From: Macrostomum lignano | Taxonomy: Eukaryota | Assembly: GCA_002269645.1 (NCBI GenBank) | Contig: NIVC01003975.1 | Location: forward strand, 2,957 to 66,956 | DNA length: 64,000 nt | Direction: 5' to 3' | Shown: piece after piece, positions 6,317-64,000 of the stretch | How the letters are laid out: each line of letters starts with the position of its first letter | How positions within the stretch are numbered: the stretch's first letter is position 1 | Program-made: the position numbers and the translations under genes | The notes under the pieces: generated by a model | What the model was told of the DNA's origin: nothing | Seen by the model: only the letters and a program-made list of their open reading frames with translations | Database searches by the model: none

Positions 6317-8134
6317 TTAGCTTCTGTGGTTGAGCCTGATTGACAGATAGGTTAGCAGAGCCAAAAACAGAACAAACCCCAGGCAGCTGCACACAACGAT
6401 GATGATCAGCAGGTGCTCGGAGGTCAACCCGCTTTTTTGGAGAATCGGCGCAGCCGGCAGCGCCTCGATGAGTTTCGTTGGAGCTGGAGCATTCAACAAA
6501 TTGATCTCCTGCTCGCAGAAGCGCTGTCCATACAGAGTACGGGCGATTGTTTCGTGATTAGATGACGGTACCATGCCCAAAGCCATGGCTTCAGCCATCT
6601 GTCTCGACCTTGTCGGGTCGTAGCAAGCATTTAAGGGCCACAGAGTGAAGTTCAGGTAGTTTCGACAAGCTGGATCGCATCCAGTCCGAGCAAAGCAGTT
6701 GTTGGCGGCCATTTCCGACATCACTCGATTCGGCATTTCTCCACTCCTCATCGACGTGATGTTACAGTCTCGTTCCACATGCGGAACTATGTTGCTTGCA
6801 ACCCAGCACAAGTTGATTGCAGCTATAGCCATACACTGGGTCAGTCTCTCTGACGCAGGAACCCTGGCCTTATTTGGATACAACCACAGAAATGACAGGC
6901 ACATTTCGTCATTTTTAGCGGCTCCAGAAAATACCGTCCGGTCATTCTTCAGTGTGGTAAAGTAGCACTCTGTTTTCAATTCATCTCCGGGTTGATACTC
7001 AACCGTTTGGTTCAAGAAAATAACTTTTGGAGAGTTGTAACTGTATTCCTGGAGCGGCCAGATGTCCCTCACTAAAGTTTCATTCCTCCAGAGAGAAATG
7101 CGTCCTCTAATACCGTTGGTGTGCATGTAGATGCCTACTCCTGTGATGTAGCGAGTCTCAGTGTGGTACCGGTTAGTGCACACCGAAGGGCACGTGTGGT
7201 TCACGCTGATCAACGGCTGTCGCGGTGGGAGAACGAGATTTCCCTCGCCATACATCACAGTTCCCAAGTCGGATGGTCGCAGGTTTTGTGTAAAGTAGAG
7301 AGCGAAGCCAGAAGCGTCGGTGTAGCCTGAATGCCTCGCCGGGTTGTTCCAGTGAAGCTGCAAAACTCCGTACCGAAAGCCATCACCGCCGATTCGGAAC
7401 CCCGCGTTGCTATTGATGCACTCGCCTTCGAGTCCGTAGGCCCAAAGGTTCATCATCTGGGTGCAGTTTCTGTGGCCCATTAAACACTGCCGTGGATTAT
7501 CGAACAGCGTCTGTTCTGGCTTGACACTGCAGGCGTACATAATCATGTGGTGCATGACGTTCTTGTTGTCGATGATCGGCCTCGATCCGATCAGGTGAAC
7601 CGGAGAGGCAGTGTTGTTCAGCTCGAACGCCTGACAGACGTATGTCGTCTCAGTGGCGGGCACGGGAGTCGGTTTGAGGGTGAAGTTTCTCACGAAAACA
7701 CCGGGCTCTTCGAATGCTGGACAGCTGAAGGCCTTCGGACACACGGTCCACGAGTTCTTGCACGTCGCGGAGTCGAGCGGGCAGATGCCAGGGTGGGACA
7801 GTCCAGTCGTTCGCGCCGGAGCCGCACCGACCTTCCACACGCAGTCGGGGTCTCCGAGCTCTTGGCCGTTCGTGATTCCGTCGCCGTCCGAGTCCTTGCG
7901 GCACAGGTCGATTGTCCAGCTGAAGCTGGCGGCCTTGAAGTCCAAGCCGAAGGGATTTATAGCGTCAGCACCGGCGGGACTCTGGTGTCCGAGTCCGACC
8001 CAGATGTCGCCTTGCTGGCACGGATTCGGGACCCGGTCGCCGTTCGGTATTCGGGACTGGAACATTCTGTACGCGTGAGAGCAGCTGAGCAGTGCGGCCA
8101 GAGCCGCATATATTATCAGCGCATTTTTTGTCAT
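6317..8134 (-). CDS. Copper type II ascorbate-dependent monooxygenase (DBH/MOXD1-like) with N-terminal temptin-like domain, signal peptide and C-terminal TM helix; intronless, 605 aa
   Basis: Signal peptide MTKNALIIYAALAALLSCSHA; temptin-like segment (RIPNGDRVPNPC...NPFGLDF...W..DLCRKDSDGDGITNGQELGDPDCVW); CuH ligands MHHM and QLHWNNP; CuM region YMHTNG and DEMC; hydrophobic tail LLIIIVVCSCLGFVLFLALLTYL. No DOMON domain is evident. Confidence 0.9.
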   Translation of the reverse strand: MTKNALIIYAALAALLSCSHAYRMFQSRIPNGDRVPNPCQQGDIWVGLGHQSPAGADAINPFGLDFKAASFSWTIDLCRKDSDGDGITNGQELGDPDCVWKVGAAPARTTGLSHPGICPLDSATCKNSWTVCPKAFSCPAFEEPGVFVRNFTLKPTPVPATETTYVCQAFELNNTASPVHLIGSRPIIDNKNVMHHMIMYACSVKPEQTLFDNPRQCLMGHRNCTQMMNLWAYGLEGECINSNAGFRIGGDGFRYGVLQLHWNNPARHSGYTDASGFALYFTQNLRPSDLGTVMYGEGNLVLPPRQPLISVNHTCPSVCTNRYHTETRYITGVGIYMHTNGIRGRISLWRNETLVRDIWPLQEYSYNSPKVIFLNQTVEYQPGDELKTECYFTTLKNDRTVFSGAAKNDEMCLSFLWLYPNKARVPASERLTQCMAIAAINLCWVASNIVPHVERDCNITSMRSGEMPNRVMSEMAANNCFARTGCDPACRNYLNFTLWPLNACYDPTRSRQMAEAMALGMVPSSNHETIARTLYGQRFCEQEINLLNAPAPTKLIEALPAAPILQKSGLTSEHLLIIIVVCSCLGFVLFLALLTYLSIRLNHRS

Positions 8135-13531: not shown

Positions 13532-21058
<7,527 letters not shown>

Positions 21059-22090: not shown

Positions 22091-22571
22091 TGTAGATTTG
22101 GGAGCTTTGAATGTAAATTTAACAGCTTTGACTGTATTTTTAAAATTTTGACTGGAGATTTTGAAGATTTGACTGTGGATTTGAATGTTTTGACAGATTT
22201 CGGGATATCCATAAACCAGCCATAAGATTATTCAGGTTATATGTAGCGGGCCCATAATTTAGCTTGCAGCACCTGCAAATGACAGTCCGGGAACAAACAG
22301 GAAATCGTCTTTTAACATGTGAGCAGGCTTGCTTGAAGGAATTTACGAGTGAGGTTACGAGTTCTGCAATTACAATCCCTCTTGTACCGATTTTCAACCT
22401 AAAATTAGCTCCGGCAGTATCTATCCATTGCTAAATATACATGTATTTGCATTCTGCGCACGGAATAAAGAGCAACATTCTGTACATTGCGCTCGATTGT
22501 GAACAATAATAGAATCTGCTTTTCTGCGCTTGCAACTTTTTCTGGACAGATTATTGACATTCACAAATACT

Positions 22572-22647
22572 CCTGTCTGTCTGTCTGTCCGTGTGTCTGT
22601 CTGTCTGACTGTGTGTCTGTCTGTCTCTCTATCTGTTTGTCTTTCTT

Positions 22648-22701
<54 letters not shown>

Positions 22702-22705
22702 CGTG

Positions 22706-22756
<51 letters not shown>

Positions 22757-22841
22757 GTCCGTCTGTCTGTCTGTCTGTCTGTCTGTATCCGTCTGTCTGT
22801 CTGTCTGTCTGTCCGTGTGTCTGTCTGTCTGGCTGTGTCTC

Positions 22842-22878
<37 letters not shown>

Positions 22879-23057
22879 GTCCGTCTGTCTGTCTGTCTGT
22901 CTGTATCCGTCTGTCTGTCCGTGTGTCTGTCTGTCTGTCTGTGTCTCTCTGTCTGTCTGTCTGTCTGCCTGTCTGTCTGTCTGTCTGTGTCCGTCTGTCT
23001 GTCTGTCTGTATCCGTCTGTCTGTCTGTCTGTCCGTGTGTCTGTCTGTCTGTGTCTC

Positions 23058-23103
<46 letters not shown>

Positions 23104-23243
23104 CGTGTGTCTGTCTGTCTATCTGTGTCTCTCTGTCTGTCTGTCTGTCTGTCTGTGTCCGTCTGTCTGTCTGTCTGTCTGTCTGTCTGTATCCGTCTCT
23201 GTCTGTCTGTCTGTCCGTGTGTCTGTCTGTCTGGCTGTGTCTC

Positions 23244-23280
<37 letters not shown>

Positions 23281-23625
23281 GTCCGTCTGTCTGTCTGTCT
23301 GTCTGTATCCGTCTGTCTGTCTGTCTGTCCGTGTGTCTGTCTGTCTGTCTGTGTCTCTCTGTCTGTCTGTCTGTCTGCCTGTCTGTCTGTCTGTCTGTGT
23401 CCGTCTGTCTGTCTGTCTGTATCCGTCTGTCTGTCTGTCTGTCCGTGTGTCTGTCTGTCTGTGTCTCTCTGTCTGTCTGTCTATCTGTCTGTCTGTCTGT
23501 CTGTCTGTCCGTGTGTCTGTCTGTCTATCTGTGTCTCTCTGTCTGTCTGTCTGTCTGTGTGTCCATCTGTGTGTCTGTCTGTCTGACTGTGTGGCTGTCT
23601 GTCTCTCTATCTGTTTGTCTTTCTT

Positions 23626-23691
<66 letters not shown>

Positions 23692-23695
23692 CGTG

Positions 23696-23732
<37 letters not shown>

Positions 23733-23746
23733 GTCTGTCTGTGTCC

Positions 23747-23780
<34 letters not shown>

Positions 23781-24021
23781 ATCCGTCTGTCTGTCTGTCT
23801 GTCTGTCTGTCTGTGTCCGTCTGTCTGTCTGTCTGTCTGTATCCGTCTGTCTGTCTGTCTGTCCGTGTGTCTGTCTGTCTGTCTGTGTCTCTCTGTCTGT
23901 CTGTCTGTCTGCCTGTCTGTCTGTCTGTCTGTGTCCGTCTGTCTGTCTGTCTGTCTGTATCCGTCTGTCTGTCTGTCTGTCCGTGTGTCTGTCTGTCTGT
24001 GTCTCTCTGTCTGTCTGTCTA

Positions 24022-24054
<33 letters not shown>

Positions 24055-24120
24055 GTGTCCATCTGTGTGTCTGTCTGTCTGTGTGTCCATCTGTGTGTCT
24101 GTGTATCTGTCCGTCTGTCT
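22572..24120. repeat. Complex (TCTG)n microsatellite, 1.55 kb
   Basis: TCTG array with recurrent interruptions (gtccgt, gtatccgt, ctctct) in duplicated blocks. Confidence 0.97.
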
Positions 24121-25073
24121 AGCAAAAGCAACACTAAAAAGCGCAACACACTGGGAAGGCACTAACAAGTTTGAACAATGCAAGTAAAATCTGACTCCAG
24201 CCGATGGGTTGGGCTGAAAAATATTCCTTTATATTGTTAGCCGTGGCTCTGATGCCCAAGCTAATTACAAATAGAGCGCAGAGGGAAATTCTAAGAAATA
24301 TACACCTACAAAATGAATAATCTTTGAAAACAAAATATTCAATCTCTGGTCGAACAACACAAATTTCTGATTTGGTTCCAGCAATTAATCAGTGTTCATT
24401 CTACACAGAGAATACGCAGTGAACTTTGCTCGCCAACAAAAATATGTCAATTTGTTCTGCCTAATCGGGAACACCAAAGCTCCGAGAGAAAAAAATCTGC
24501 CAGAAAATGTCGCCAAAAATATAGTTTTAAAATCCTTCAGAAAAAATGTAATGCGCAGAAACAAGCAGCTTTAGCAAAAAAAAATAATATTTGTAATAAG
24601 CGACAAGGCTTCACAGAGGAACAGTGTGACGACAAAATGAGAGCTGACAAAATTAAATGTAAGCATAAATTTTTACATCCATACGCAGCGTATACTACTT
24701 ACAATATATCAAGTGAGTAGTATGAGTATGACGCAATCGCGAAAAGTAAATGATAGAAAAATAAATAAATATATCAGAACTATACAAAACAGCCGCAGAA
24801 GGTAGAAGGCAATAAAATTCCTGCTCAAAAATTTAAACACCCTCACGAGACCCATAATTAAGTTGTAAAGTTGAAGAGATCAAAAATATAATAGGCACTC
24901 TCTACTGCTATAAGGCACTGACATGAAAATGATAAAATATTTTATTACCAAAGCGAGGGACGGAAAAAAGATAAGAAAATTTCATACATAAAACAGACCG
25001 TCACCTCAGATAATATTTAAATAGCTACTACTAACTACTTAGGGCAGTAGTGCAAGCGCGTGCGAGTGCAGTT

Positions 25074-46810: not shown

Positions 46811-47426
46811 GTATATACAATATTTACGTGTTGATTTTGAATTAAGGTAAACATTTTTATAAACATGCCATGCATTGTCTGTTTTGACTTTCTTAATTAA
46901 TAACTTTATACTATTTTCCTGTTACGGTTATAATGCCTAACCTGTTTGCAGTTTATACAGAAATTGCGATTATGAATAAATTAATAATCTCAGTAATTTT
47001 ATATTGTAGTATTTGAAAAACAATAAACAACTATAAACATATAAGTAAGATGCGCTGCTTTAAGTGTATACATTATGCCAATAATGCGAACGTTATTAAC
47101 CTTAAATGACTGAAGTCATTCTTATTCTTTTAAATTGAAAATTTTAAATTTGAAAATAGTGCCAGAAATTTATTTAAATTCTTTAAAAAAGATAGATTAT
47201 AATAATAGTTTTTTATAGTGGTATATTAGTCATAGTAAAAGAGGAACCGCGATTTTGTTTGGATTATACGCTATCATGAATTAAATCTTCTTAAACACGA
47301 GCATTTATATTAGTACACACAAAAATATCCGGCAGAACTCCATGCGCAATTTATACTACTTAATCGAAATTTGAGTCAGCAGTAGTCAGATAAGAGTTTT
47401 GTTTATAGTCTGCCCGGGTATTGTAA

Positions 47427-50400
47427 TTACTTGGTGTGCACCAGGGCGGGGAAGGTGCGCATTCGAAGCCGTTCAACTTCAGCTCTGAGCACCGCCACCT
47501 CTTTGGCTTGAGCTTTGGCCAGGTCAACAAGTCGCTGGCGTTGCAGAATCTGCTCGTACCGCTTCTTGGCGGCGTGCGACTCGTCACGTTTCTCCGCTGC
47601 AATTGGCGGCCAGTTGCAGTTGCTCTTTTTATAATATCGGTTTACGAGTAGATCTCTCCCTCTATGCGTTCTTAATCTCTCCCTTTGGATCATTTCTAAC
47701 TTCTATCTCCTCTCCCCTCTCTCATCTCTCTCCCCTCTCCCCTCTCCCCTATCCTCTCTCTTTTCAACCTACTCTCCTCTTTATCCTCTCCTCTCTCTTC
47801 TCTCTCCTCTTCCCTCCTGTCTCTCTCTCGTCCCATCTCCTCTCGCCTCTCCTTTTTCCTCATCTCTCCTGTCTCGGTTTCTCTTCGTATCCCAATTCTT
47901 TCTCATTCCCCTGTGTCTGCAAAACTTTATAGCAGCTTGGCACACAGTCTAGCTGAATCCTTATGCAGCCGTCAGCATTCCCAATGCACTCTCACCATTA
48001 GTCTCCTCGATGTGCACTCGCTCGTTAACGCCAACATTCATTTCCTCCAGCTCAGCGTCTAGTCGCTCATTTTTCTTGGCCAATTGTCCAGATTTCACCT
48101 CGGACAGTTCCTTCAGCCTGGCTTGTTTCATCTCAATCATTTTGGCGTGATGCTGGAGCAGATATTTTTGTAGGTTTGAAGAAATATTTTATTCGTTAAT
48201 AGTAGTCAGTCTAGCTAAATGTCCTCTATATTTTATAACCAACCTTTTTCATGAGCTCGATTGCCTGGTCCAGCTTCTGAATCTCGCTGTTGATCAAGCC
48301 GTCGTAATCCTCAGTTGACAGGTACTGAAATTGGGTGTAAATAGGTGAATTAAAACTGAGTTTAAAACTGTCCCTGGATATTGGTGTCAGGAAGGGCCAC
48401 TGGAGCTTAAAACAGTCACAGGATATTGGTGTCAGGAAGGGCCACTGGAGCTTAAAACTGTCACTGGATATTGGTGTCAGGAAGGCCCACTGGAGCTTAA
48501 AACTGTCACTGGATATTGGTGTCAGGAAGTCCCACTGCAGTATAAAACTGTCACTGGATATTGGTGTCAGGAAGTCCCACTGCAGTATAAAACTGTCACT
48601 GGATATTGGTGTCAGGAAGGGCCACTGCAGTATAAAACTGTCACTGGATATTGGTGTCAGGAAGGGCCACTGCAGTATAAAACTGTCACTGGATATTGGT
48701 GTCAGGAAGGGCCACTGCAGTATAAAACTGTCACTGGATATTGGTGTCAGGAAGGGCCACTGCAGTATAAAACTGTCACTGGATATTGGTGTCAGGAAGT
48801 CCCACTGCAGTATAAAACTGTCACTGGATATTGGTGTCAGGAAGGGCCACTGCAGTATAAAACTGTCACTGGATATTGGTGTCAGGAAGTGCCACTGCAG
48901 TATAAAACTGTCACTGGATATTGGTGTCAGGAAGGGCCACTGCAGTATAAAACTGTCACTGGATATTGGTGCCAGGAAGGGCCACTGCAGTATAAAACTG
49001 TCACTGGATATTGGTGTCAGGAAGGGCCACTGCAGTATAAAACTGTCACTGGATATTGGTGTCAGGAAGGGCCACTGCAGTATAAAACTGTCACTGGATA
49101 TTGGTGTCAGGAAGTCCCACTGCAGTATAAAACTGTCACTGGATATTGGTGTCAGGAAGGGCCACTGCAGTATAAAACTGTCACTGGATATTGGTGTCAG
49201 GAAGTCCCACTGCAGTATAAAACTGTCACTGGATATTGGTGTCAGGAAGGGCCACTGCAGTATAAAACTGTCACTGGATATTGGTGTCAGGAAGGGCCAC
49301 TGCAGTATAAAACTGTCACTGGATATTGGTGTCAGGAAGGGCCACTGCAGTATAAAACTGTCACTGGATATTGGTGTCAGGAAGGGCCACCGGAGTTTAA
49401 AACTGTCACTGGATATTGGTGCCAGGAAGGGCCACTGCAGTATAAAACTGTCACTGGAAATTGGTGTCAGGAAGGGCCACTGCAGTATAAAACTGTCACT
49501 GGATATTGGTGTCAGGAAGGGCCACTGCAGTATAAAACTGTCACTGGAAATTGGTGTCAGGAAGGGCCACTGCAGTATAAAACTGTCACTGGATATTGGT
49601 GTCAGGAAGTCCCACTGCAGTATAAAACTGTCACTGGATATTGGTGTCAGGAAGGGCCACTGCAGTATAAAACTGTCACTGGATATTGGTGTCAGGAAGG
49701 GCCACTGCAGTATAAAACTGTCACTGGATATTGGTGTCAGGAAGGGCCACTGCAGTATAAAACTGTCACTGGAAATTGGTGTCAGGAAGGGCCACTGCAG
49801 TATAAAACTGTCACTGGATATTGGTGTCAGGAAGGGCCACTGGAGCTTAACAATGAGACTGGATTATATGCATTTTGCGTAACATCAGATAAGTCTTGCT
49901 CTGTCCAAATGTAACTACTCAAATCAAAAGATTCTAGTAAGTAGTATAACTTTTAAATGCACTAAGATCTTAGTCCTACCCTCTGAATTTCGCGCGTTAT
50001 CTTGAAGCTATTAATATCGCGCAGCTTATTAATGAGATCCTCGGCGTCCATCCGCATGCCGCGGAGTTCCCATTCGAGTCGGCGGAACGTCTTCTTGGAG
50101 TCTTTGGCCTCCTCCATGAACCGCACCTTGGCCTCGCCCAGGGTCTTGATCTTGCTATTGAGGTCCTCCACTACACCGCGGCTGAGCAGAAGGCTGTCGG
50201 CGAAGTCAATGATAAAGTCGTCGCGCGGTTCGACCTCTACTTGACCCTGCTTGACCAGCAGCTGCACCTCCAGGTTGTTAGCGAACTGGGCTCGCTGATT
50301 GGCTAGTTGCTCCTGGAAGCAGATTGTTACAATTGCTTGGCGGCTAAGAAGCTATACTGTATCTATTGTATTGTCCTGTATCTTATTAGTCTCTCTCTCC

Positions 50401-53400
50401 CTTTATCTCAGTCTCTCTCCCTTTATCTCAGTCTCTCTCCCTTTATCTCAGTCTCTCTCCCTTTATCTCAGTCTCTCTCCCTTTATCTCAGTCTCTCTCC
50501 CTTTATCTCAGTCTCTCTCCCTTTATCTCAGTCTCTCTACCTTTATCTCAGTCTCTCTCCCTTTATCTCAGTCTCTCTCCCTTTATCTCAGTCTCTCTCC
50601 CTTTATCTCAGTCTCTCTCCCTTTATCTCAGTCTCTCTCCCTTTATCTCAGTCTCTCTAACTTTATCTCAGTCTCTCTCCCTTTATCTCAGTCTCTCTCC
50701 CTTTATCTCAGTCTCTCTCCCTTTATCTCAGTCTCTCTCCCTTTATCTCAGTCTCTCTCCCTTTATCTCAGTCTCTCTCCCTTTATCTCAGTCTCTCTCC
50801 CTTTATCTCAGTCTCTCTCCCTTTATCTCAGTCTCTCTCCCTTTATCTCAGTCTCTCTCCCTTCATCTCAGTCTCTCTAACTTTATCTCAGTCTCTCTCC
50901 CTTTATCTCAGTCTCTCTCCCTTTATCTCAGTCTCTCTCCCTTTATCTCAGTCTCTCTCCCTTTATCTCAGTCTCTCTTCCTTTATCTCAGTCTCTCTCC
51001 CTTTATCTCAGTCTCTCCAACTTTATCTCAGTCTCTCCAACTTTATCTCAGTCTCTCTCCCTTTATCTCAGTCTCTCTCCCTTTATCTCAGTCTCTCTCC
51101 CTTTATCTCAGTCTCTCTCCCTTTATCTCAGTCTCTCTCCCTTTATCTCAGTCTCTCTTCCTTTATCTCAGTCTCTCTCCCTTTATCTCAGTCTCTCTCC
51201 CTTCATCTCAGTCTCTCTCCCTATCTCGTTCTCTCTCTCTTATGGTACTTTAGCGTTAATCGGAGACCAAGCACTCACCTGCAGCAGTTTCAAGTTCTCT
51301 GCATCAGACTGCATCTGGTTGTACTCAGACTCGCGCTTAGTGACAAACGCTTGAAACTCGGACAGCGCCAGGGTCATGTCGCCAATCAGCAGCTCTTTCT
51401 CGCGCTTGGCCCGCCTCAGCTGGCAGAAGCGCTGCCACACGTGGGCGTCGAGGCCCGACGGCATGTGCCTCTCGTCGTCCTGCTCGCGAAGCACCTGTTG
51501 TTATTTGATCAAAGTATATCGCTTATTGGATGCTGCGAAATCCCACTTGACATCGTTCCACAACCAGTGCTGATGATGCAATTCTGCACATTCCGCAGAG
51601 TCCTGAGCACATTCAAGTGTGCCAACACTGTACGCAGGCACGCGCTCATAGAGGATGTACAGTGGCCCGTTGACTTCCTAACCATCAGGCATGTCTTGGG
51701 GGTTGGCCCTCGTAAGCCTCAAATTAATTAGTAATCGAACTAGGGTCAACTAGGTCAGGTGACGCGACAGTCACACAAAAATTGTCTGAATGATTCTGTG
51801 AACTTATTCATTCATGAACTCATCAGCTAGTGCAGAAAAACACCTTGTCAGTTTCTCAGAATATTCGTCTCTTTAAAAAGCATTATTCACCTGTCCCAGA
51901 GCCTGTCGGGCGCCCTCCTGTCGGCTGGCCGTTGTCGGCCGGTTTCCGTACGGATTGAACGGCGCTTCGCCCAGACCGGCTTTGATCTTCAATCTGCAAA
52001 TTGAGTTGTTTTGATAAGAATTTGGGTATCGACTATTAATGCTAGCATTATATTATAAGTTCAAAATAAGAGATTAGAGGTGTCGGGACATCAAAAGTAT
52101 TCCGCTGTTAACAAGTTAAAATGATAAATATGGATTATTGTCGAGACATCAAAGGGTCTTACCGCCCTTTTTAAGTTTAAAATGAGAGATAAGAAACGGT
52201 GTCGGAACATCAAAGTGGCCGCCGTTATCAAGTTAAAAATGAGAGATAAGAAACGGTGTCGGAACATCAAAGTGGCCGCCGTTATCAAGTTAAAAATGAG
52301 AGATAAGAAACGGTGTCGGGACATCAAAGGGGCCGCCGCCTTTTTTAAGTTAAAAAAAGACATAATCAAGGTAACGCTACTATTTATATTGTAATAATGT
52401 GTTGGCAACACTTACTGGGGCAATTTCTTCTTGTACATTTTGTGCAGCGTGTCGGCCATTGCTGCGGAAATTTCTGGAAATTCTTTCTTGAAAGCGGAGA
52501 AGTTCTTCTCCATGTACTCGTTGTCGGACTTGGCGTATTGAATCTGCTCGTCTTGGGTCTTCACCAGCTTGCGACTGCGGTCGATCAGGGGTCCGAGATC
52601 CTCTAGGGCGGCTCGACGCTTCGTCAGTTGGCTAGCGAGCTCCTGCTCGCGAACGCTGAGCTCCTCCTCGATGAGCAACGCCAGCCTCAGCCGGTAGATC
52701 TTCAGCTCCTCGTGCACCACAGCAGACTGGGTTTTGACTTTGAGGGAGAACAGCTGTCGGAGCTCCTGATCGAATGACGTCATGTTGTCCTCCGTGAGGC
52801 CCTAGAAATCGGTGCGCGAGGTGAGCGTTTTGGGTGAGTCTGGCTTGTTTGGCGCTAATTAAAAACATCTGAGAAGCTAGCATTTAAAATCAAGTTGGCG
52901 GTCTGTGAGACACCCAAAGCGGCGCCTAGAGGCACACAAATTTGGCGCTTGTGAGCCACCCGATTTGGTGCTGTGAGACACCCAAATTAGCGCCGTTGAG
53001 ACACCCAAATTAGCGCCGTTGAGACACCCGAATTAGCGCCTTTGAAACACCCTAATTGGCGCCTTTTTGAGACATCCAAATTGGCGCCTTTAAGACACCC
53101 AAATCGGCGCCTTTGATACTCCTAAATCGGCGCTTATGAGACATACAGATCGGCGCCTTTAAGACACCCTAATTGGCGCCTTTGAGACTCCCAAATCGGC
53201 GCCTTTGATACTCCCAAATCGGCGCTTATGAGACACACAAATCGGCGCCTTTGAGACACCCTAATTGGCGCCTTTAAGACTCCCAGATCGGCGCCTTTGA
53301 GACACCCTAATTGGCGCCTTTTTGAGACACCCAAATCGGCGCCTTTGATACTCCCAAATCGGCGCTTATGAGACACACAAATCGGCGCCTTTGAGACACT

Positions 53401-56400
53401 AAAAATTGGCGCCAGTGAGCCACACAAGTTGGCGCCTTTAAGACACGCAAAACGGCGCCTTTGAGACTCCCAAATCGGCAACTTTGAGATTCCCAAAACG
53501 GCGCCTGTGAGACAGCCGATTTCAATGATCACCTAAAGTCGATAATCCAAATCTGCAGTCTTGTTTCAAACATCAAGTGGTTTGGCGTATCTACAAGGGA
53601 GAAATTTCTCACCTGCAGCTTCTTCAATTCGGCCTCGAGCTGCTTGCGATATTTCTCCCGCTCCTCTTGCAGTTCCCGAACCCGGCGCTCGTAGTCTTCG
53701 GCTGCTTTTCGTTCCTCTTCGTTCCATTCGGTTTCCTGGAATTGCAGTGGACATTGGGACGTGATCGTGGCTATCCATGTACATTTTCACAGATTCATCA
53801 ACGGTTCACCGACGTTATCCACGTTCACAAATTCAAAAAATTTGCAGATCCACCCATTCACAGGTTCACCCATTTACAGGTTCACTATTTCACAGTCTGA
53901 TCAATTGACATATACACATATTCACTTGTTCACGGTTTCCTAAGTTTATCCATTCAAAGATTCACACACCCACAGATTTAACAATTTACAGTTTTATCCA
54001 TTCACAAGTTTGTACCCATTTACAGGTTCACCCATTCACAGGCTCACCCGTTCACAGGTTCACCCATTCACAGGTTTATCCATTCACAGGTTCACCCATT
54101 CACAGGTTCACCCATTCACAGGTTCACCCATTCACAGGTTCACCCATTCACAGGTTCACCCATTCACAGGTTCACCCATTCACAGGTTCACCCATTCACA
54201 GGTTCACCCATTCACAGGTTCACCCATTCACAGGTTCACCCATTCACAGGTTCATCCCTTTAAGAGGTTCATCCATTCACAGGTTTACCCATTCACAGAT
54301 TCTCCGATGTATGCACCTGTTCACCAATTCCCTCACCTGCTTATTAATCATAAACGCCGGCTTAGGAATGTCCTTCTTGAGCTCGTCCTCCTTGTGCACC
54401 TCCAGCACTCCGCCCATCATCTTGTCCAGGCCGCGCTCTCGCCAGTTGTCCAGCCTCTCCCGTCTGAGTCGATCCTCCTCAGCTTGACGCTCCTCTACGA
54501 GCTTCTTCTGCTGCTCCGGCGTCAAGTATTTCTCAACGGTGACCTCGCTGTCGCTTACAGTGAACAGCAGCTCGGGCTTCTCAACGGCCACAAAGTTCGG
54601 ATCCGACACGGCGGTTGGCAAGCCCAGATCCGATACGATCTTCTTTACTCGCAAATTTCTTTCGCGAATTTTGCTCATCTCCTGGTCTTTCTTCTTGTAA
54701 ACTTCGTTGAATGCCTTGTTGAAGCCGGTCTTGATGTGCCGGATCGAGTCCTGGTTCGAGTTGTTGTTTGGCGAGTTTGAGGTTTAGTTCATTGCTTGTG
54801 TCGTCTCAGGAAAATTTAGTGGGAGAAAAGTAGTGAAAGATCCGAGAAATACTTTTTTTAGTTTTGGAAAATACCAGTGTGAGTCTTGAGAACTCTGTGG
54901 GATCTCGAAAATCCCTGGTGTGAGTTCTGGGAATCCCTGGGTGAGTTCCGGGAAATCTCTGGGGCAATTCCGGGAAATCCCTGTACAAGATTTAGGAAAT
55001 CCCTGTGTGAGTTCTGGGGAATCCCTGTGAGAATTCCGGGAAACCCTTGTGTGAGTTCTCGGAAATCTGTGTGGAATCTCAAAAATCTCTGGTGTGAATT
55101 CTAGAGAATCCTTGTGTGAATTCTGGGAAGTCTTTCTTGTGCGAGTCTATGGAAGTCTTTCTTGTGCGAGTCTATGGGAAGTCTTTCTTGTGCGAGTCTA
55201 TGGGAAGTCTTTCTTGTGCGAGTCTATGGGAAGTCTTTCTTGTGCGAGTCTATGGGAAGTCTTTCTTGTGCGAGTCTATGGGAAGTCCCGTTTGACAAAA
55301 TGCGAGATATGCAGGGAAACCCAGAGTGAATTCTGGGAAATCCCTGTGCAATATTTGAGAAATCCCTGTGTGAGTTCTGGGGAATTCCTGTGCCAAATTC
55401 GGGACATCATTGTGTGAGATCTGGGAAATCCCTGCGGGAAATTCGTGGAATCCTGGAAATATACAATGCAATAGAGGGAAATCCGTACATATACAATGTA
55501 CGGCAATGACAGAATATTCCTCTATATTTTGGTTTCACTGAGACACCAAATATGAAATCCGGAAAATTCTATTTTATTTTTAGGGAAATCCAACGACGAC
55601 CCTGCAGGGAGTTCCATAAGTGCGATTTTTAGGAAAGAAATCGTAAGAATGCAAGCTTCAAATGTCAGACCTGTTATTAATAAATGGCGTATTTACTAAT
55701 TAGAAACAATTGGCTCACCTGCAGAAGCACAATCTGGTTAATCTTCTGCTCCCGGGAGTGCAGCTCAAACTGCGAGTAAAACATCGACTTGAGAATGCCG
55801 AATCGCTCAGCTAAAAATAAAAAATAATAACGGTGTTACACTGTCCGTAACTTGCTAGCTGTTTAATTTTGAAAAATATTTAATTGCAACATTGTCAATA
55901 ATAAAATGGCATACAGTATTTTTTTTGAAAACTTTTTGGCATATTTGCATTTACTATGAGCTCGTTGATAAATGGTTTTCAGTTAGTACACGCTTTGATA
56001 TCACTCAAAACGAGGTGATTCTTTAACGATGATGTTTTAATGAACTTTATCGTAAATATATTTGTTATACTTCACATTTTAAAAAGTGCTAATAATTGTT
56101 TTACTTTAAAACTTGTCTTATTTACTTACTGAGTGGTCTGTTAATTTTAATAGTAAAAATCGACTTTTTAGTAACAACAGGTTAGTATTTAAATGTACTT
56201 TTCTCGTGAATTTTGCAATTTTCTAAGAAATCCAGTAAAGCTATTCCGAAGCAACGTAAAAATTAAGAGCTGCCGGCTTTAGTAACGTATCTTTTTTCTG
56301 ACGAGCAAAATTTTCCGGAATATTTTAGAAATGCATTTTAAAGCAAAGAAAAAACTTGAAATAGCATTGTTAGTTAATTTTCCAGACTTATTAATTTGTT

Positions 56401-59400
56401 AATAGATTTACCTGAAGCCTTGTCTGTGATGACTGTTGACGATTCGAGAAAAGAGTCGAGTTTGAATATTTTTGTTAATAATAGTGGGCTATTTGCATAT
56501 TTTCATATCATTAAAATTTGATTAAAATTGTTTAAGCTGGCAAGCTTAAATGCACACTATATAGAATATTGCTACTCCCCCCAATCTTTAATAAGCGATG
56601 CAAAGGTTTTCAGTTAGGTAAGGCTGAGAAGTTGAAAATTTCCATGACCCAAGAAATTGAACTAAAAAATATGATTCAAATTTAAACTGATAGTGTGATA
56701 TTTAGATAAATCTTTTATACATGTATTAGTCTATTTTATCATTCAAGCGAAATTAAAACTGCTTACTAAAAGCGATTGCAGATTAGTGCATGTAAAGGAC
56801 TTAATAGTGGCGCAAGGGACTTCTGAGGTGAACAGGGATGTCAGGGACTTCTGGGGGAGAACAGGTGTGTCAGGGACTTTTGGGGGAGAACAGGTGTGCC
56901 AGGGACTTCTGGGGGGGAACAGGTGTGCCAAGGACTTTCTGTGGAGGAACAGGGGGCACAAAAGTATAAAAGTACATGTAAACAATGTAGAATACAAGCA
57001 TCAAAGCGGATTATTAAAAGCCAAAAAGCACCAGAGTTTGAACCGCATGTACTTGTAATGCATGCTACTCGTAACACAGATATTAATTAAACTTCAACCA
57101 TAACAGCTATTGTCACCTGCACTGCCCTGCAGAGTGATAGAATCCTGCTCCTCCTGCTGCTCCTGGGTCTCCTCATCGGCGCCTTCGGCCTTCAAATAAA
57201 TTTAGCAATTAAATGCGTGAAAATATTAAACTTTTTATGACGCTGAAATATACTTAGAGAAGATTAGTCATTTACAAGTGTATCATAGACATAAACGCCA
57301 ATTATATCTATTGTCATCGTTGCAATAATAATCGTGATTTATATAAAGTTTCTTTCAATCCAAGTAGTATAGAACGCACTTTTATCTTAAGGAGAAAACA
57401 GCGACAAGAGTTTTGTGCACCCATAACAGCACCAGTGCGTGCGGAACAGTAATAACTGCCTTTACTTCGAATATAAATTAATATTCCATAAAACATATAA
57501 ATTAAATGCATTGAGTGCAACACAAAGAAGAAAGTATAAACTAAAAAAGTGCCTTATAAGTACTCTTCCAGTCAAAAAATTCTAAGAAGTTAACCATCAT
57601 TGATTCGTTTACCTTCAGGTTGAATCGCGTTTTAATGCATCTTCCAGCGGCTTTAAATTGTAACGAATTGTTGTTAGCAATTTCATGTAAACTACTACGA
57701 TTTAGCTTTATGTCTGAGGAATACTACTCGTCACTAGACTCGTAAGTAAAAATATTAGCAAAAGGCAACCGAGACTATATCATTTTCTCATATTTTTAAG
57801 TAATAATTAATATGAAATTCTTTAAAAACCTGCGGAATACTGCTTGTCACTGACTCGTAAGTAGGAGCATATGAAAAAAGCAACAAAAATGTGTTGATTA
57901 GAATTTTTCCAACGCTTTAGTTACCTGCTGATCCTTGCTATGAGAGTCCAGCAGCTCGCGCCTGTCTTTGGCCTCCTGAATCTCTATCACTCGCCGCTTG
58001 GCAACCTGATCGAGTCGATCCTGCTCTTCTTTAGTCTGCGGTCTCAGCGGGTAGTTCGACACCTCTAGGGGGGCGCCGAACGTTACAATACTGCGACCTT
58101 TGACCTCCATTTCTTCCCAGCATTCGCGTTTTATGACCTCGCGAGGAACTTCTTGGCCAGATTTTCCAGCCCGATGCGCTTGCGAACGCTGGCCACCTGC
58201 GTTAGCGGATGAGCCATGCGATAATCATTCATATTTTCCCTAATCCACATCGATGGGATTCTCCCGTCTTTTCAAAATCCCTATCAAATGCGATTCTGTA
58301 ATTCCTAGAAAATCTCTAATGAGATTCTCGCATTCCTATAAAATCCCTAATAAGATTCCTACATTCCTAGAAACTCTATAACAAGATTCTCCCATTCCTA
58401 TAAATCCCTAATGAGATTCTCGCATTCCTATAAAATCCCTAACAAGATTCTCCCATTCCTAGAAAATCCCTAACAAGATTCTCCCATTCCTAGAAAATCC
58501 CTAACAAGATTCTCCCATTCCTAGAAAATCCCTAACAAGATTATCCCATTCCTAGAAAATCCCTAACAAGATTATCCCATTCCTAGAAAAGCCCTAACAA
58601 GATTATCCCATTCCTAGAAAATCCCTAACAAGATTATCCCTTTCCTAGAAAATCCCTAACAAGATTATCCCTTTCCTAGAAAATCCCTAACAAGATTATC
58701 CCATTCCTAGACAATCCCTAACAAGATTATCCCATTCCTAGAAAATCTATAACAAGATTCTCCCATTCCTAGAATCTCCCTAATGAGATTATCCCATTCC
58801 TAGAATCTCCCTAATGAGATTCTCCCATTCCTAGAAACTCCCTATCCATTGGATCCTCTGTATTCCTAGGAAATCCTCATCAAAAACATTCCCTTAAATA
58901 AAATCCTCTGAACTTTGAACTTGAAAACACGGTGAATGCTTTCGCACCTCACTATCAGTCTCCTGACCGAACTTGGCCTGCTCGTCCAAGTCGAGCTCGA
59001 ACTCGTGCGGATCGAGCCTCTCCAACTCGTCCGATTCGGCAGCATTTTTATCCACCATGGCTTTGATGTGGCTGCGCATCTCCGACAGCCTGTCGCGCAG
59101 TTCGGTCTTCTTGTCGGCGTATTTTCTATCCTCCTCTGTCAGGGCTTCGCGCTCCTGATCGTGCAGCCAGGTCGAGTTCGAGACCCGGCGAGCTGAGGAC
59201 GTTCCAGACGCCGCGCCGTCGTCATCGCACTCGGAAACTCGTCGTTCAGGCCGTTCGGTCGGCTGGGTCCACGTCGGCATTCCGGCCGATGCCTCGTTCT
59301 CGGCGGTGATGGCACTCATCCGGTCGGAGCTGAAGGCCAGCTCCCAGTCGGTAAATTTGGCGGAGAGCTCGTCTGGCAGCCTGCGGGGGTGCGAACGTGG

Positions 59401-62400
59401 ACGAGGTGCGATGTGCGGAGATCGCTATTGGCTACAGGCTCTTTCTATCTTTCTTTCCCACCTTCCTTCCCCGTCTTGCTTCTCTATCTTCCTTCCCAAT
59501 CACCATTCTCACCTGACAGAAAATCGGCACAGGCTGCCGTCGTATCCGGTAGTTAGTAGAGACTTGCCGTCAAGCGACAATGCTGCGGATAGCACACCAC
59601 CGTTGGTGTAGCTGTGGGCGCGCACTTTGACGGCGACTTCCTGCACGTAAATATTATAATAGTAACCAAATGAAGGTGTGAGGTGGGTGTCGGAGTGAGA
59701 GCGGGAGAGAAGTTATCTAGGGCAGAGGGGCAGAGGCGTGGGTGGATATCAGCTGGTGTACGTGTAAGAGCGGGAAAGAAGTTATCTAGGGCAGAGGGGC
59801 AGAGGCGTAGGGTGGATGTCAGCTGGTGTACGTGTAAGAGCGGGAAAGAAGTTATCTAGGGCAGAGGGGCAGAGGCGTGGGGTGGATGTCAGCTGGTGCA
59901 CGCGTAAGAGCGGGAAAGAAGTTATCTAGGGCAGAGGGGCAGAGGCGTGGGTGGATGTCAGCTGGTGTAAGAGCGGGAAAGAAGTTATCTAGGGCAGAGG
60001 GGCAGAGGCGTGGGTGGATGTCAGCTGGTGTACGTGCAAGAGCGGGAAAGAAGTTATCTAGGGCAGAGGGGCAGAGGCGTGGTGGATGTCAGCTGTGTAT
60101 TTCCAGATCAACGGTCAACAGAAAGCATCACTTGCATTCTTCTCTAAGTCGACCACCGTCACGTGACCGTCGCAACCGTACACCAGCAGAGCCAGCTTAG
60201 ATAGATGAATTTTCAGCTGCATCTCGGAGTCCTCGGCAAAAACTTCGGGAGAAGCGGCAACGTTGGCAGATAAAATCTGGTCTTCGGGCACTTCGTCCTG
60301 CGATTTTATTATATACGAGTATGTTTTGCATTAAATTCAAATTAAAGTTAAAATCAAAGTACATTTGATCCAACATTCGCGTGCGATTTGAGAAGATACT
60401 TCAAGCAAATCAAAATGCAAAAAAACGATAAATCAAAATCTGTTGCTTCTAAAATTTGCGTGATATTGCGTATGCATTTGTTTAAATAAATAAAAAGCAA
60501 CACGTGAAAAAGAGATTGTAAAAAAATAATAAGCAAAATTTCAACAGCCCGCAGGTCCATTGCAGTAAATAAATTTATGGAAAACGTTGATTTGTTATAA
60601 ATTGGTTGCTTAAATACAATTGTTCCATCCCACAAATTTGAAGTTTTGCAATCAAGGCTCATCAAAGCTTAACTTTGCTTTAATTAGCTTGTAAATAAAT
60701 TGGATCGCCTAAAAACAGAATTTTGTAAGGGCTGCTGGGGACACCTCATCTGGGCGCTGGTTCACTGCCTCCTCAATAGCTCTCTGCTGAGCCAAGTGCC
60801 TGCTGACACTGGCCATGCTGAGCCTCCACAGGGCCGTGCCCTGACGCCCCTGCAGCTGCTGTCGTTGCGGCAGAGAGGCAGTCAAGTCAACGGAGGACTT
60901 CGGGCCTCTGCTAGTGAAAGCGACCTCAGATTCGGGTGTCACAGATCTCTGAGACTCAAAGTGCTGCTGAGGTTGCTGTCCCTTCTGTGTGGATCGAGTT
61001 TTCATTTTTGTATTAAATTTTACCTTTTTATAACCTTTTAAACATACGACGCGATCGACAAAAATGGTGACAACAAAATAAAGCAGTTGCGGAGATGGAA
61101 AAAATGCCTGTGATTTTCATTAAAAAACGTTTTAAACAAACGAGTGACATACGTGAGTATACAGAGCTAAATAATTGCTTTTCGAGTTCGATTAAAACAA
61201 ACCTCATCAACATTTCGAACACTTCTTGAGCCTGCTCAGCTATTGGTTGATCCACTATCTAAACATGATTTTTAACGATAGAGAAGGTTTTTCAGCGATA
61301 TTTCCCCTGCGCCACTTTAAGTAGCGTATAAAGTGCATGCTGGTTAGATTTATTTACCGATTCTTCCTCGTGTTTGCGATGAATCTTCGCGGTGGCAGAA
61401 TTAATTGATGCGTTGATGCGGTACGGTGGTTTATAAGTAATTTCAATTGTAGAATTAGTTTAACTGTATAAAATACCTGACGTAGTTTGCTGTACTTTTC
61501 AAGCTTTAGTGACAAACGTACATACATATACACATGTAGCAAAAGAGTACATAGTACATGTACTTTAGAGTTCCAATTTGTGATCGTTATTATAACATTT
61601 AGATTTAACTCCGCGCCGTTATTCTCAACTATTTTAACAAAAATTGGTGTCTTTGTGATGACACTTTTTGCGACTTGATTCAAGCATTTTTTCTTTCGTT
61701 TAATTATGCTTGACTACACACACGAAACATAAATTCAGAACAACAGAATTGGAGTTTTGAACACTAAATCCCAGCAAATTCATTTAACTAATATTGATTT
61801 GGCACTTAATTCAAACAAAAACGTGCAGTTCAATACGTAATATTATAGTTACCTGGGCGACTTGGGCATATTCTGAACAAACATTGACATTCTTCGTTTA
61901 GCCTAAACGAATAAAAATGAGAAATCGTCCAGATATTTTAGTTAGCGTGGGAATTAAATTCTGTACACTAACTACTTTGAATAATAAATTGTTGGCATGC
62001 CTCAATACGTATACGTATACGTTGTACTTTACTGAATAAGTTTTGCAAATTTAAACATGCACTGATTAAAAAAATAATCAACAAAAACAAATTTAAACGG
62101 TTTTTATAAATATTTTACCTTCTTGTAAAGTTCCATGAACTGAAATAATATTATTGTCACATTTTTGATCGAATAATTTTTTGCAAGTAAAGATCCGTCT
62201 GAAGTGTTCGAATGAATTAAAACAAATCTAACTACATGTAAGTGCTCGTAGTTTGTTAATATTTTCCGTGATTTTCTTTAATCTAGTTCTGCTTGAATTG
62301 GCATTCAATTCTGGGCAGTAACTTACCGACTGTTGCGCCAAACTGCTACCAATGTCCACTGATAGTCTGCGCTGAGTCTTACAATTGTTGAAAGTTACAG

Positions 62401-63706
62401 TGAAGTTGACGTTAATTTTTATTACTCGTAATTTTTTTATTTTCAAGCAAAAACGCCTGTGACATGCTTCCAGTAGTATTTCCAGCATTTTAGCCCGTTG
62501 AAGAAAAAATAAAGAAAAGAGCTAGCTACTAAAATACCTCCGTCCGTTGCAGAGTTGCTTGTTTGATTCGAAGCTAAAAAGAAGTTTTAAATTATTAAAA
62601 GGACGACGCTTGATAAAATATCAAGAAATCAAAATCAGAGCCAATACTTCTTTTACTAAATATGATTTTCAAAACTGACTTGTGCAAGTGAAAATAATCT
62701 AATGGTATACCTGTCGTTTTTCTTCCTCGGAAATATCGGCCTGGTTTGAAAAATTGGCACCGATTTGAAAATAAACAACTTAAACAATTAAAATTTAATT
62801 AAATAACTTTGTCTTCGTGAATTCGACAGAGAAATGCAACTATAACAAAAAATCAACTTCAAACTCTAAGAAAAGTTACTAAGGAAATCAAAATTTGGCA
62901 ACAAAAATACCTTCTTTAATTCTTCAAGAAAGTTTTCCTACAAAATTGGGAGGGGTAAAATAAGAAACATCAAATGTGCCTTTAAAAACTAAGGTTAAAA
63001 CTGTGTGACGCACGCATAAAAAACGGACAATAGAAGAACTTAAAAGAAAGGGAATTAAAGTACGCATTGTACCTTGGCTCTCTGGCGGCCAAATCCGCCA
63101 TACCCGCTAGAGAGGCTTGGTCTTTTGCTGCTGAAATTCAAACAGAATTTAAGAGGGAGATGCCTCTAGCTGGTTTCGTGGGACACTGACAAAATATAAG
63201 CGTCATGGTATGAATTGGAATCCATAGTCTATGGCAGAGAGCCTGTGGTATAGTGTCTATGGTAGAGAGTCTATGGTAGAGAGTCTATGGTAGAGAGTCT
63301 ATGGTATAGTGTCTATGGTAGAGAGTCTATGGCTGAGAGCCTGTGGTATAGTGTCTATGGTAGAGAGTCTATGGTAGAGAGTCTATGGCTGAGAGCCTGT
63401 GGTAGAGAGTATTTGGCAAAGAGCCTGAGGTATTCTATGGCGGAAAGTCTATATCAATTAGCTAAAGCTAATAGTTAGTACAAACCTGATTAGTTGGCAG
63501 CGGGTACAGCAGCAGCTGGCGAGTGCTCTTGCCGATGGTGTAGAACCGGCCGCTCGCCGCCGAACAGGGTGCAGCCGTAGCCGCTGGCGTCCAGCCTGTA
63601 GGCCTGGCGCTTCACGGCGCTGTCTTCGAACAGGCCGCGATTGGGCCATAGAACTGAGGGGGATCTGGGAGATAGATTTGGGAGAACATGAGCTGCGATT
63701 TCTGAC
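47427..63706 (-). CDS. CFAP43: Cilia- and flagella-associated protein 43 (WDR96), 3' 16 exons; 5' part lies beyond the window; contains apparent frameshifts
   Basis: Exons 63706-63486, 60297-60136 (GC donor), 59640-59513, 59380-58948, 58196-57925, 57189-57117, 55810-55719, 54750-54337, 53735-53613, 52801-52416, 51993-51891, 51494-51279, 50312-49980, 48324-48244, 48152-47996, 47596-47427. Diagnostic segments [76 protein letters not shown]. Frame breaks at ~58143 and within 63550-63640. Confidence 0.9.
48370..49850. repeat. 45-bp minisatellite, ~33 copies, CFAP43 intron
   Basis: Unit GGATATTGGTGTCAGGAAGGGCCACTGCAGTATAAAACTGTCACT, highly homogeneous. Confidence 0.98.
50388..51225. repeat. 20-bp minisatellite (CTTTATCTCAGTCTCTCTCC), ~42 copies, CFAP43 intron
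   Basis: Near-perfect tandem array. Confidence 0.98.
52160..52350. repeat. 57-bp tandem repeat, ~3 copies
   Basis: AAGTTAAAAATGAGAGATAAGAAACGGTGTCGGAACATCAAAGTGGCCGCCGTTATC repeated. Confidence 0.9.
52900..53520. repeat. ~22-bp minisatellite (AAATCGGCGCCTTTGAGACACCC), CFAP43 intron
   Basis: About 27 degenerate units, each with a GGCGCC palindrome. Confidence 0.92.
53850..54300. repeat. 16-bp minisatellite (CACAGGTTCACCCATT), CFAP43 intron
   Basis: Homogeneous core at 54020-54250 with degenerate flanks. Confidence 0.93.
54880..55450. repeat. Compound minisatellite: degenerate GAAATCCCTGTGTGAGTTCTGG units with an embedded 27-bp array (GAAGTCTTTCTTGTGCGAGTCTATGGG, 55127-55285)
   Basis: Two repeat types visible; the inner one is near-perfect, ~6 copies. 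Confidence 0.88.
56412..56432 (-). CDS. Candidate 21-nt symmetric micro-exon of CFAP43 (adds VITDKAS)
   Basis: tcgtcaacag|TCATCACAGACAAGGCTTCAG|gtaaat; phase 1 to phase 1, matching the surrounding CFAP43 intron (57116-55811). Confidence 0.45.
56810..56945. repeat. 27-bp repeat (CAGGGACTTCTGGGGGAGAACAGGTGTG-like), ~5 copies
   Basis: Short degenerate tandem array in an AT-rich intron. Confidence 0.85.
58290..58860. repeat. 30-bp minisatellite (ATTCCTAGAAAATCCCTAACAAGATT[C/A]TCCC), CFAP43 intron
   Basis: About 19 units. Confidence 0.95.
59695..60095. repeat. ~60-70-bp purine-rich minisatellite, CFAP43 intron
   Basis: AGAGCGGGAAAGAAGTTATCTAGGGCAGAGGGGCAGAGGCGTGGGTGGATGTCAGCTGGTG repeated ~6 times. 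Confidence 0.93.
60709..61005 (-). CDS. Unassigned GC-rich exon-like ORF inside the CFAP43 intron (98 aa)
   Basis: Open frame [15 protein letters not shown]...[29 protein letters not shown] with exon-like GC content against AT-rich flanks; possible acceptor acacag| and donor GAG|gtgtcc, both phase 0. No recognised homology. Confidence 0.4.
   Translation of the reverse strand: MKTRSTQKGQQPQQHFESQRSVTPESEVAFTSRGPKSSVDLTASLPQRQQLQGRQGTALWRLSMASVSRHLAQQRAIEEAVNQRPDEVSPAALTKFCF
61203..63130 (-). CDS. Chain of micro-exons (nested gene or CFAP43 cassette exons), product unrecognised
   Basis: AG/GT-bounded exons 63130-63073 (58 nt), 62937-62911 (27), 62740-62711 (30), 62573-62538 (36), 62377 or 62371-62327 (51/45), 62139-62119 (21), 61902-61853 (50), and weaker 61503-61477 (27), 61258-61203 (56). 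They splice into an open frame: [50 protein letters not shown]-(TQ)[38 protein letters not shown]. Confidence 0.6.
63225..63440. repeat. 14-bp minisatellite (GTCTATGGTAGAGA)
   Basis: Degenerate tandem units just 3' of the CFAP43 donor at 63485. Confidence 0.88.
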
Positions 63707-63769
63707 CTGTAAGTAGCTCGTATCTCTGCCCACACTCCTATATAGAAATTATAATCTACCCCATCTATA

Positions 63770-64000
63770 CCCCTCTCTATACCCTCCTCCCTTTACCTCC
63801 TCTTTTTTTACCTTCCTCTCAATACTCTCCTCTCAATACCCTCCTCTCAATACCCTCCTTCCAATACCCTCCTCTCAATAACCGCCTTTTAATACCCTCC
63901 TCTCTTTACCCTCCTCTCTTCACCTTCCTCTCAATACCCTCCTCTCAATACTCTCCTCTCAGTACCCTCCTCTCAATACCCTCCTCTCAGTACCCTCCTC
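63770..64000. repeat. ~15-bp pyrimidine-rich repeat (CCTCCTCTCAATAC), runs off the window end
   Basis: Degenerate tandem units. Confidence 0.88.

Follow-up and report, generated by a model that had tools for sequence, protein, structure and literature searches.

Does an intron of a conserved axonemal gene conceal a further set of coding exons? The question is raised by the gene CFAP43 of the free-living flatworm Macrostomum lignano, one intron of which, 3.2 kb long, holds seven to nine short exon-like segments on the minus strand. The locus lies in contig NIVC01003975.1 of the Mlig_3_7 assembly (GCA_002269645.1, NIVC00000000; PMC5730564), near one end of the 64,000-nucleotide stretch analysed here, which will be called the window. 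All coordinates are window positions, and adding 2956 converts them to positions of the record. Because the contig stops at window position 64000, exons upstream of that point are out of view. A preliminary inspection of the letters by themselves (the sequence-only reading) had proposed a hidden chain of symmetric phase-0 micro-exons, belonging either to a gene nested in or interleaved with CFAP43 or to a combinatorial cassette of CFAP43 itself. Computational follow-up leaves the segments plausible as real exons, and tentatively, short of an even chance, favors a small same-strand gene nested within the intron and made up of unannotated spliced exons.

The host gene provides the frame of reference. 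The minus strand of the window carries the final WD40 exons and the entire coiled-coil portion of CFAP43, a tether/tetherhead protein of the axoneme. Both the exons flanking the intron and those between 59319 and 47430 find their counterparts in CFAP43 of molluscs (a snail among them), cestodes and mammals; the hits include the PDB chains 9fqr_H8, 9d2f_Y and 8j07_i6, from solved axoneme structures, and the Pfam family PF25828. For comparison, 11 full-length CFAP43 proteins were used as orthologues. The joined translation of 63706-63486, 60297-60136 and 59640-59513 aligns unbroken with residues 609-742 of one of them, P0010 (E 1e-11), and contiguously with residues 598-735 of another, P0008 (E 3e-6). 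The junction LYPLPTNQ|DEVPEDQ stands opposite LPS-ETPDGK in the former and LP-DEPPKKE in the latter, in a length-variable loop between WD40 blades. The host intron is thus phase 0, as the sequence-only reading had stated. Since the orthologues run contiguously over LPTNQ|DEVPED and do not align to the micro-exon peptides, canonical CFAP43 needs no segment and misses nothing at the junction: the segments lie outside it and the chain is an extra. A tblastn search with the 11 orthologues found no credible match for any segment.

The intron itself (63485-60298) fits its earlier description as AT-rich unique sequence. It has 32-39% G+C and a single tandem array of 14 bp, and a minisatellite is present in most of the other CFAP43 inter-exon gaps of the window. 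A search of 60000-64000 against Rfam, with E up to 1, gave no match, so the unique sequence is not explained by an intronic small nucleolar RNA or microRNA of a known family.

Seven segments, A to G, reappeared with exactly the coordinates, lengths, donors and open frames first described for them (Table 1), and five consecutive ones, B to F, are indeed multiples of three that are each open in phase 0. The acceptor of B is among the two best of the set. Segment A has two further options, namely an acceptor at 63165 that turns it into a 93-nt open, phase-0 symmetric exon, and a donor at 63104 (GCGG|gtatgg) that shortens it to 27 nt. If G is left unspliced it reads CCC AGG TAA, an immediate stop. 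In composition the segments range from 26 to 53% G+C and from 51 to 67% purines, against 15-35% G+C in most of the flanking sequence, which is rich in T, and the donors follow one another at 119-376 nt, mostly at 160-270 nt.

Table 1. Window positions of the exon-like segments, the CFAP43 exons on either side of them and associated features.
Feature	Position	Strand	Remarks
Host CFAP43 exon, WD40 region, 5' of the intron	63486..63706	-	Phase-0 end LYPLPTNQ|
14-bp minisatellite	63226..63410	.	Sole tandem array of the host intron
Candidate first coding mini-exon, 35 nt	63191..63225	-	ATG 63225-63223 in context agactATGG; weak donor TT|gtcagt; in phase with A; putative
Segment A, 58 nt	63073..63130	-	Acceptor tttcag, donor AAG|gtacaa; frame 1
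Segment B, 27 nt	62911..62937	-	ENFLEELKK; donor AAG|gtattt; only phase 0 open
Segment C, 30 nt	62711..62740	-	Donor CAG|gtatac
Segment D, 36 nt	62538..62573	-	Donor GAG|gtattt
Segment E, 51 nt	62327..62377	-	45 nt with acceptor 62371; donor TCG|gtaagt
Segment F, 21 nt	62119..62139	-	FMELYKK; acceptor atttcag, donor AAG|gtaaaa
Segment G, 50 nt up to donor-like site	61849..61902	-	Range includes stop (61851-61849); donor-like CAG|gtaact at 61853; candidate terminal coding exon
ATTAAA	61699..61704	-	Possible poly(A) signal, ~145 nt past the stop of the nested-gene model
Candidate H, 27 nt	61477..61503	-	LEKYSKLRQ; phase-0 symmetric; donor CAG|gtatttt; absent from the sequence-only reading
Further candidate, 27 nt	61358..61384	-	IHRKHEEES; donor TCG|gtaaat; poor acceptor
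Host CFAP43 exon 3' of the intron	60136..60297	-	Phase-0 start |DEVPEDQ

The arrangement of these segments exceeds chance, although the quality of the individual sites does not. Within 63183-61300 the minus strand has 11 copies of the motif GGTA and the plus strand 3, an approximately fourfold excess confined to the sense strand; in 300 dinucleotide shuffles of the same interval the count averaged 4.1 and peaked at 10, none of them reaching 11. The longer motif AGGTA is found seven times on the minus strand and never on the plus strand (shuffles: mean 1.4, maximum 5, 0/300 reaching 7). One minisatellite aside, the GGTA density of this interval is the highest in the 64 kb on either strand; the AT-rich region at 38-44 kb, taken for comparison, has ~1.3 GGTA/kb per strand. 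A second test built chains from candidate exons delimited with a generic splice-site matrix, admitting those that were phase-0, a multiple of three and open. The longest such chain has seven members on the sense strand and one on the opposite strand, and no more than four in 300 shuffles. In the part of a threshold grid that runs from lenient to moderate, the region gives the longest such chain of the 64 kb, and of 485 control windows on both strands between 0 and 4 matched the target. Motif counts, chain length and control windows thus agree with the earlier impression of a non-random, strand-specific, exon-like array. When each of the 11 GGTA donors was paired with its nearest plausible acceptor by rule, 7/11 of the resulting lengths were divisible by three (binomial estimate, p about 0.04).

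Spliced together, A to G amount to 273 nt with a single open frame of 90 codons, the remaining two frames containing 4 stops and 1 stop. The encoded peptide is internally repetitive, as had been noticed at the outset: the repeat spans the proposed junctions A-B-C and E-F-G, and its score is reached by 0.1% of 2000 shuffles (p about 0.001). Sites of the form [KR][KR]x[ST] number three in the coding frame and one in each of the other frames.

How would such a chain begin and end? A candidate mini-exon at 63225-63191 offers an answer within the intron. Joined to A-G in the computer, it yields an uninterrupted 312-nt coding sequence whose start, stop and ATTAAA all fall inside the intron. In the proposed model, translation would start at ATG 63225 and run through eight exons in the order 63225-63191, A, B, C, D, E, F, G. 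Segment G would be the terminal coding exon, read into TAA 61851-61849 and followed by ATTAAA at 61704. The predicted introns measure 60-216 nt, and their donors would lean on the exon side (AG|GTA). A nested gene of this kind ranks first among the readings because it takes the stronger of the two acceptors of A and lies whole within the intron. The sequence-only reading had held that A, entered in phase 2, has no partner inside the intron and had accordingly preferred a gene starting outside the window. Neither point survives: the ATG mini-exon is in phase with A, acceptor 63165 makes A a 93-nt phase-0 exon, and the complete 312-nt coding sequence is contained in the intron. Of its wider alternative, a nested gene or a CFAP43 cassette, both halves stand as possible readings, and it is the interleaved start beyond the window that is no longer favored.

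In the predicted protein a unit [K/R]RxS[L/V] … F[L/M]ELxKK-A would occur twice, and a third site, RRMS, would be added to those of the two units. The 103-residue product of the nested model is hydrophilic (isoelectric point 10.1, grand average of hydropathy -1.03) and composed mainly of S, R, K, Q, E and L. Visual inspection and hydropathy show no start in the window with the hydrophobic N-terminus of a signal peptide. We infer a cytosolic phosphoprotein, probably helix-prone or disordered, on which basophilic kinases, PKA for example, might act.

Several observations weigh against a functional nested gene. The donors had been called good, a description that does not hold up: on a generic matrix they score 0.4-4.8 bits, and the acceptors range from -6.2 to +6.0. 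In M. lignano the motif GT[G/A]AG marks 122,399 of 187,627 regions around cis-splice sites, or 65% (PMC8629364). It fits one of the nine donors, that of segment E (gtaagt) alone. The others have AG|GTA followed by A or T and form a coherent class that relies on the exon side and is untypical for this species. At strict thresholds the target is not special among the 485 control windows, the enrichment disappearing because most sites are individually weak. The donor proposed for the first exon is poor. Further, the model leaves unused a donor-like site at the end of G and does not account for two more AG|GTA-type sites downstream (61477, 61358). Open frames of single segments are weak evidence, since several segments are open in all frames (C, D and F in all three, E and G in two). 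The 273-nt chain shows no three-base periodicity (chi-square 3.5, df 6, p 0.75), compared with chi-square values of 29.9 (162 nt) and 68.8 (417 nt) for CFAP43 exons proper of this window. By our estimate the test has little power over a stretch of 91 codons in which R, K, S, Q and E abound and the third position is unbiased, so that the result does not disprove coding but removes its usual positive sign.

Database searches add to this side of the balance. The spliced chain has no match in a collection of 5.8 billion proteins that includes NCBI and UniRef; the collection holds no M. lignano CFAP43 either, which makes its silence on the chain uninformative about M. lignano transcripts. Neither Pfam nor PHROGs contains a homologue of the chain, nor do the PDB sequences, where the best E is 0.15. 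Its best Pfam match, GGDEF_GdpP, scores 16.8 bits against a cut-off of 30 and was set aside as chance, as was the weak resemblance of a stretch of 23 residues to the motif LDxxxxxPEGxDxxVWxRxC of CFAP43, which had an E of 0.5-0.7 when 5 kb were searched.

The absent periodicity, the untypical donors, the weak and threshold-dependent sites, the frames open in several phases and the lack of a homologue in the databases searched also speak for a non-functional origin, a serious contender that we nonetheless consider doubtful. The segments would then be cryptic pseudo-exons of a decayed tandem duplication, the relic of a gene fragment, or the outcome of chance and selection by eye. In the duplication version a unit bearing AG|GTA has been multiplied, and the multiple-of-three lengths and the open frame owe something to chance and something to the choice of sites by eye. 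The roughly regular spacing of the donors is in keeping with this, as are a decayed look-alike and a recurrent string. The look-alike is a residual similarity of 70% over 79 nt between 62819-62746, in the B-C intron, and 62125-62050, which comprises the 3' end of F and the start of the following intron; the copy in the B-C intron has lost the GT. The string AGGTATTTT is present three times. The 79-nt match suggests an old local duplication of an exon-bearing unit. Such an event fits a gene built by exon duplication; a decayed tandem duplication could also multiply the motif without any function, and this possibility counts against a nested gene. Duplication of DNA within the intron was considered as a source of the peptide repeat and rejected, no long repeats having been found; alignments of exon DNA are not significant for the pairs A/E, B/F and C/G, and D/H gives p 0.026.

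Three observations speak against a non-functional array. Neutral decay should randomize length modulo three, yet segments of 21-51 nt are mostly multiples of three. The motif enrichment is limited to one strand and to the same 1.9 kb as the exon-like islands of composition. Finally, the spliced product has one 90-codon open frame and a significant peptide repeat. Should transcripts fail to confirm the chain, the locus would serve as a warning that an intronic duplication in decay may look very much like a set of exons.

One further segment-like sequence lies downstream, at 61107-61024 on the minus strand. Its 84 nt are open and phase-0 symmetric, its peptide is hydrophobic where those of the other segments are not, and its end, GGTTATAAAAAG|gtaaaat, is identical in 15/17 bases to the end of F, TTTACAAGAAG|gtaaaat.

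A third explanation assigns the segments to CFAP43 itself as alternative exons, either as phase-0 cassettes in the loop or as an alternative 3' end, and is on present evidence unlikely. In the cassette form, A from acceptor 63165, B-F, H and perhaps more would lengthen the variable surface loop between WD40 blades. In the 3'-end form, exon 63706-63486 would be joined to A(93)-B-C-D-E-F-G and a stop, producing a propeller-only isoform with a 103-residue basic tail. In phase, most segments would fit: both ends of B, C, D, E, F and H, all of them open, agree with the phase 0 of the host intron, as do those of A at 93 nt with acceptor 63165, and the unspliced G supplies the immediate stop. The loop at the junction varies in length, and one orthologue bears ~110 additional residues there. 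Against this, acceptor 63165 (ctag|A, 9/16 pyrimidines) is weaker than 63130, the use of 63130 leaves A out of phase, and G as assembled, at 50 nt, breaks the CFAP43 frame. A frame break in the upstream exon (see below) does show at least one indel in the contig, so that G could conceivably be 51 nt long in reality and, as C and H do, end in CAG. None of the 11 orthologues has a similar insert sequence, and a charged beta-propeller insert of 64-86 residues would be unprecedented among those aligned, apart from the unrelated insert just mentioned. The most elaborate form of the idea, lineage-specific phase-0 cassettes variably combined to insert a helical loop with RRxS sites between the WD40 blades, is very improbable. 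Were it true, CFAP43 of a free-living, early-branching flatworm would have acquired a layout resembling micro-exon genes for intracellular control of ciliary or sperm motility. The organization would then be older than parasitism, and unusual as a set of propeller-loop cassettes.

The orthologue with the longer loop, P0009 (1891 residues), has its ~110 extra residues at about 690-810. They are Ser/Thr/His-rich and stand exactly at the loop in which the M. lignano intron lies. This insertion may be a genuine lineage-specific loop or an intron retained in the gene model.

An interleaved gene whose first exons lie out of sight past the contig end, entering A at 63130 in phase 2 so that the first base of A completes a codon, is the least probable of the readings by our estimate, as it is made unnecessary both by the mini-exon 63225-63191, which supplies the two missing bases in phase together with a complete open reading frame (ORF), and by the phase-0 solution at 63165, and interleaved same-strand genes are rare. 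A related reading, in which exon 63706-63486 is dual-coding and joins A in phase through a fully open third frame, was rejected because it is frames a and c that align with the orthologues; its Arg-rich product resembles an off-frame reading of GC-rich sequence.

If the nested gene is taken as the working model, the question becomes what kind of gene it would be. The sequence-only reading had pointed to the micro-exon genes (MEGs) of Schistosoma. These have 10-20 exons that measure 6-81 bp, with 15 bp the commonest length and multiples of three in the majority, separated by introns of 100-5000 bp, and their products are hydrophobic, 'sticky' and secreted, bearing a signal peptide at the N-terminus and the motif FLφφFX6Wp(K/H/R) (PMC10526429). 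The predicted M. lignano segments would share with them a series of very short exons, most of a length divisible by three, whose skipping would preserve the frame, introns of a hundred bases or more, a tendency to be overlooked by automatic annotation, and a small product without detectable relatives. The differences are substantial. The predicted segments here are fewer and longer (7-9 of 21-58 nt, with 5 to 7 multiples of three and introns of 60-216 nt), and the product is strongly hydrophilic and lacks a signal peptide, whereas MEG products are hydrophobic and secreted. The 103-residue product does not contain FLφφFX6Wp(K/H/R), and no similarity to MEG proteins was found in the collection of 5.8 billion proteins or in Pfam. 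With signal peptide, hydrophobic motif and sequence similarity all absent, the locus is not a member of a MEG family, and the proposed kinship reduces to a likeness of layout only. The layout would still matter. One proposal places the gain of micro-exon gene organization in the parasitic Neodermata, while allowing for a possibly deeper 'turbellarian' history (PMC4398949), and a confirmed case in Macrostomum would bear on that question.

Nested genes and multi-gene transcription units within M. lignano are another parallel. Of its genes 30% are trans-spliced, ~7% of assembled transcripts are precursors for at least two genes, and the spliced leader ends in ATG (PMC5730564, PMC8629364). A small ORF that is complete from start to stop, has a poly(A) signal and lies in a host intron on the strand of its host would be of an ordinary kind for a genome with 30% trans-splicing and multi-gene transcripts. 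Trans-splicing into the chain is a different matter: acceptor 63130 fits the trans-splice motif [T/C]TNCAG best, but a leader joined there would give MQQKTKPL and a stop after 8 codons, and this unproductive start was rejected.

A third point of comparison is with alternative microexons. Frame-preserving alternative microexons sit in the surface loops of conserved proteins, as exemplified by the 3-27 nt neuronal microexons of bilaterians, and those known are usually single and conserved. The segments resemble them in their multiple-of-three lengths, in sharing the phase of the host intron and in their position at a variable loop between WD40 blades. They differ in forming a chain of at least six that would add 60-90 residues, with no sign of conservation.

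Confirmation of the chain by transcripts would establish an unannotated orphan gene, or an isoform of CFAP43, composed almost wholly of symmetric micro-exons in a free-living macrostomid. It would also offer a worked example of what standard annotation overlooks in a repeat-rich genome with hidden polyploidy, as that of M. lignano is.

Several features of the surrounding locus deserve mention in their own right. The exon at 63706-63486 (minus strand) requires a 1-nt frame shift in TTCGGCGGCGAGCGGCCGGTTCTACACC, at about 63564-63537. The frame that aligns with the orthologues is a as far as CTLFGGE and c thereafter; frame a reaches a TAA right before the donor, and frame c carries a mid-exon TGA. 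The break is either an assembly indel or the mark of a damaged copy in a polyploid genome. On the other side of the intron, exon 60297-60136 must finish at AAT|gcaagt (60136/60135) to keep frame with 59640-59513, which would make the following intron a GC-AG intron. The WD40 exon at 59640-59513 (minus strand; donor gtgaga) lies between a 70-bp minisatellite at 59698-60099 and the exon starting at 59380, and aligns with the final WD repeat of the orthologues.

The distal part of the host intron contains a 300-bp GC-rich island within its AT-rich sequence, at 61005-60709 on the minus strand, with long ORFs on either strand. The sense ORF runs from ATG 61005 to a donor-like GAG|gtgtcc at 60745, 87 codons that are in phase with exon 60297; left unspliced, it extends over 98 residues to a stop at 60709, with an ATTAAA at 60684. 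It shows a weak periodicity of codons (chi-square 12.6, p 0.049). Searches that included Pfam and PHROGs found no homologue of this ORF or of the neighboring candidate peptides, and no gene with exactly this product is recorded. The island might provide a short isoform of CFAP43 with an alternative first exon, or it might be another nested ORF.

The minisatellites of the CFAP43 gaps (47000-64000) have a different unit each time, with periods of 14, 16, 20, 23, 26, 29, 31, 45, 57 and 70 bp, and several of them extend to 0.5-1.5 kb. Elsewhere in the window some minisatellites create spurious long ORFs, for instance at 14014-16149 and 22487-24187.

The only nearer CFAP43 locus that turned up is in a metagenome (ENA ERZ25878582, contig ctg82254, 36 kb). 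It is a compact eukaryotic gene with short introns that had been split into ORFs by a gene caller that assumed a bacterium, and it shares 50-65% of residues with the window's CFAP43, rising to 79% in the most conserved stretch. Since this locus begins downstream of the WD40 region, it is unusable for judging conservation of the segments. Farther along the window, at 6317-8134 on the minus strand, an intronless gene encodes 605 residues with Temptin_C and copper type II ascorbate-dependent monooxygenase domains (PF24784, PF01082, PF03712).

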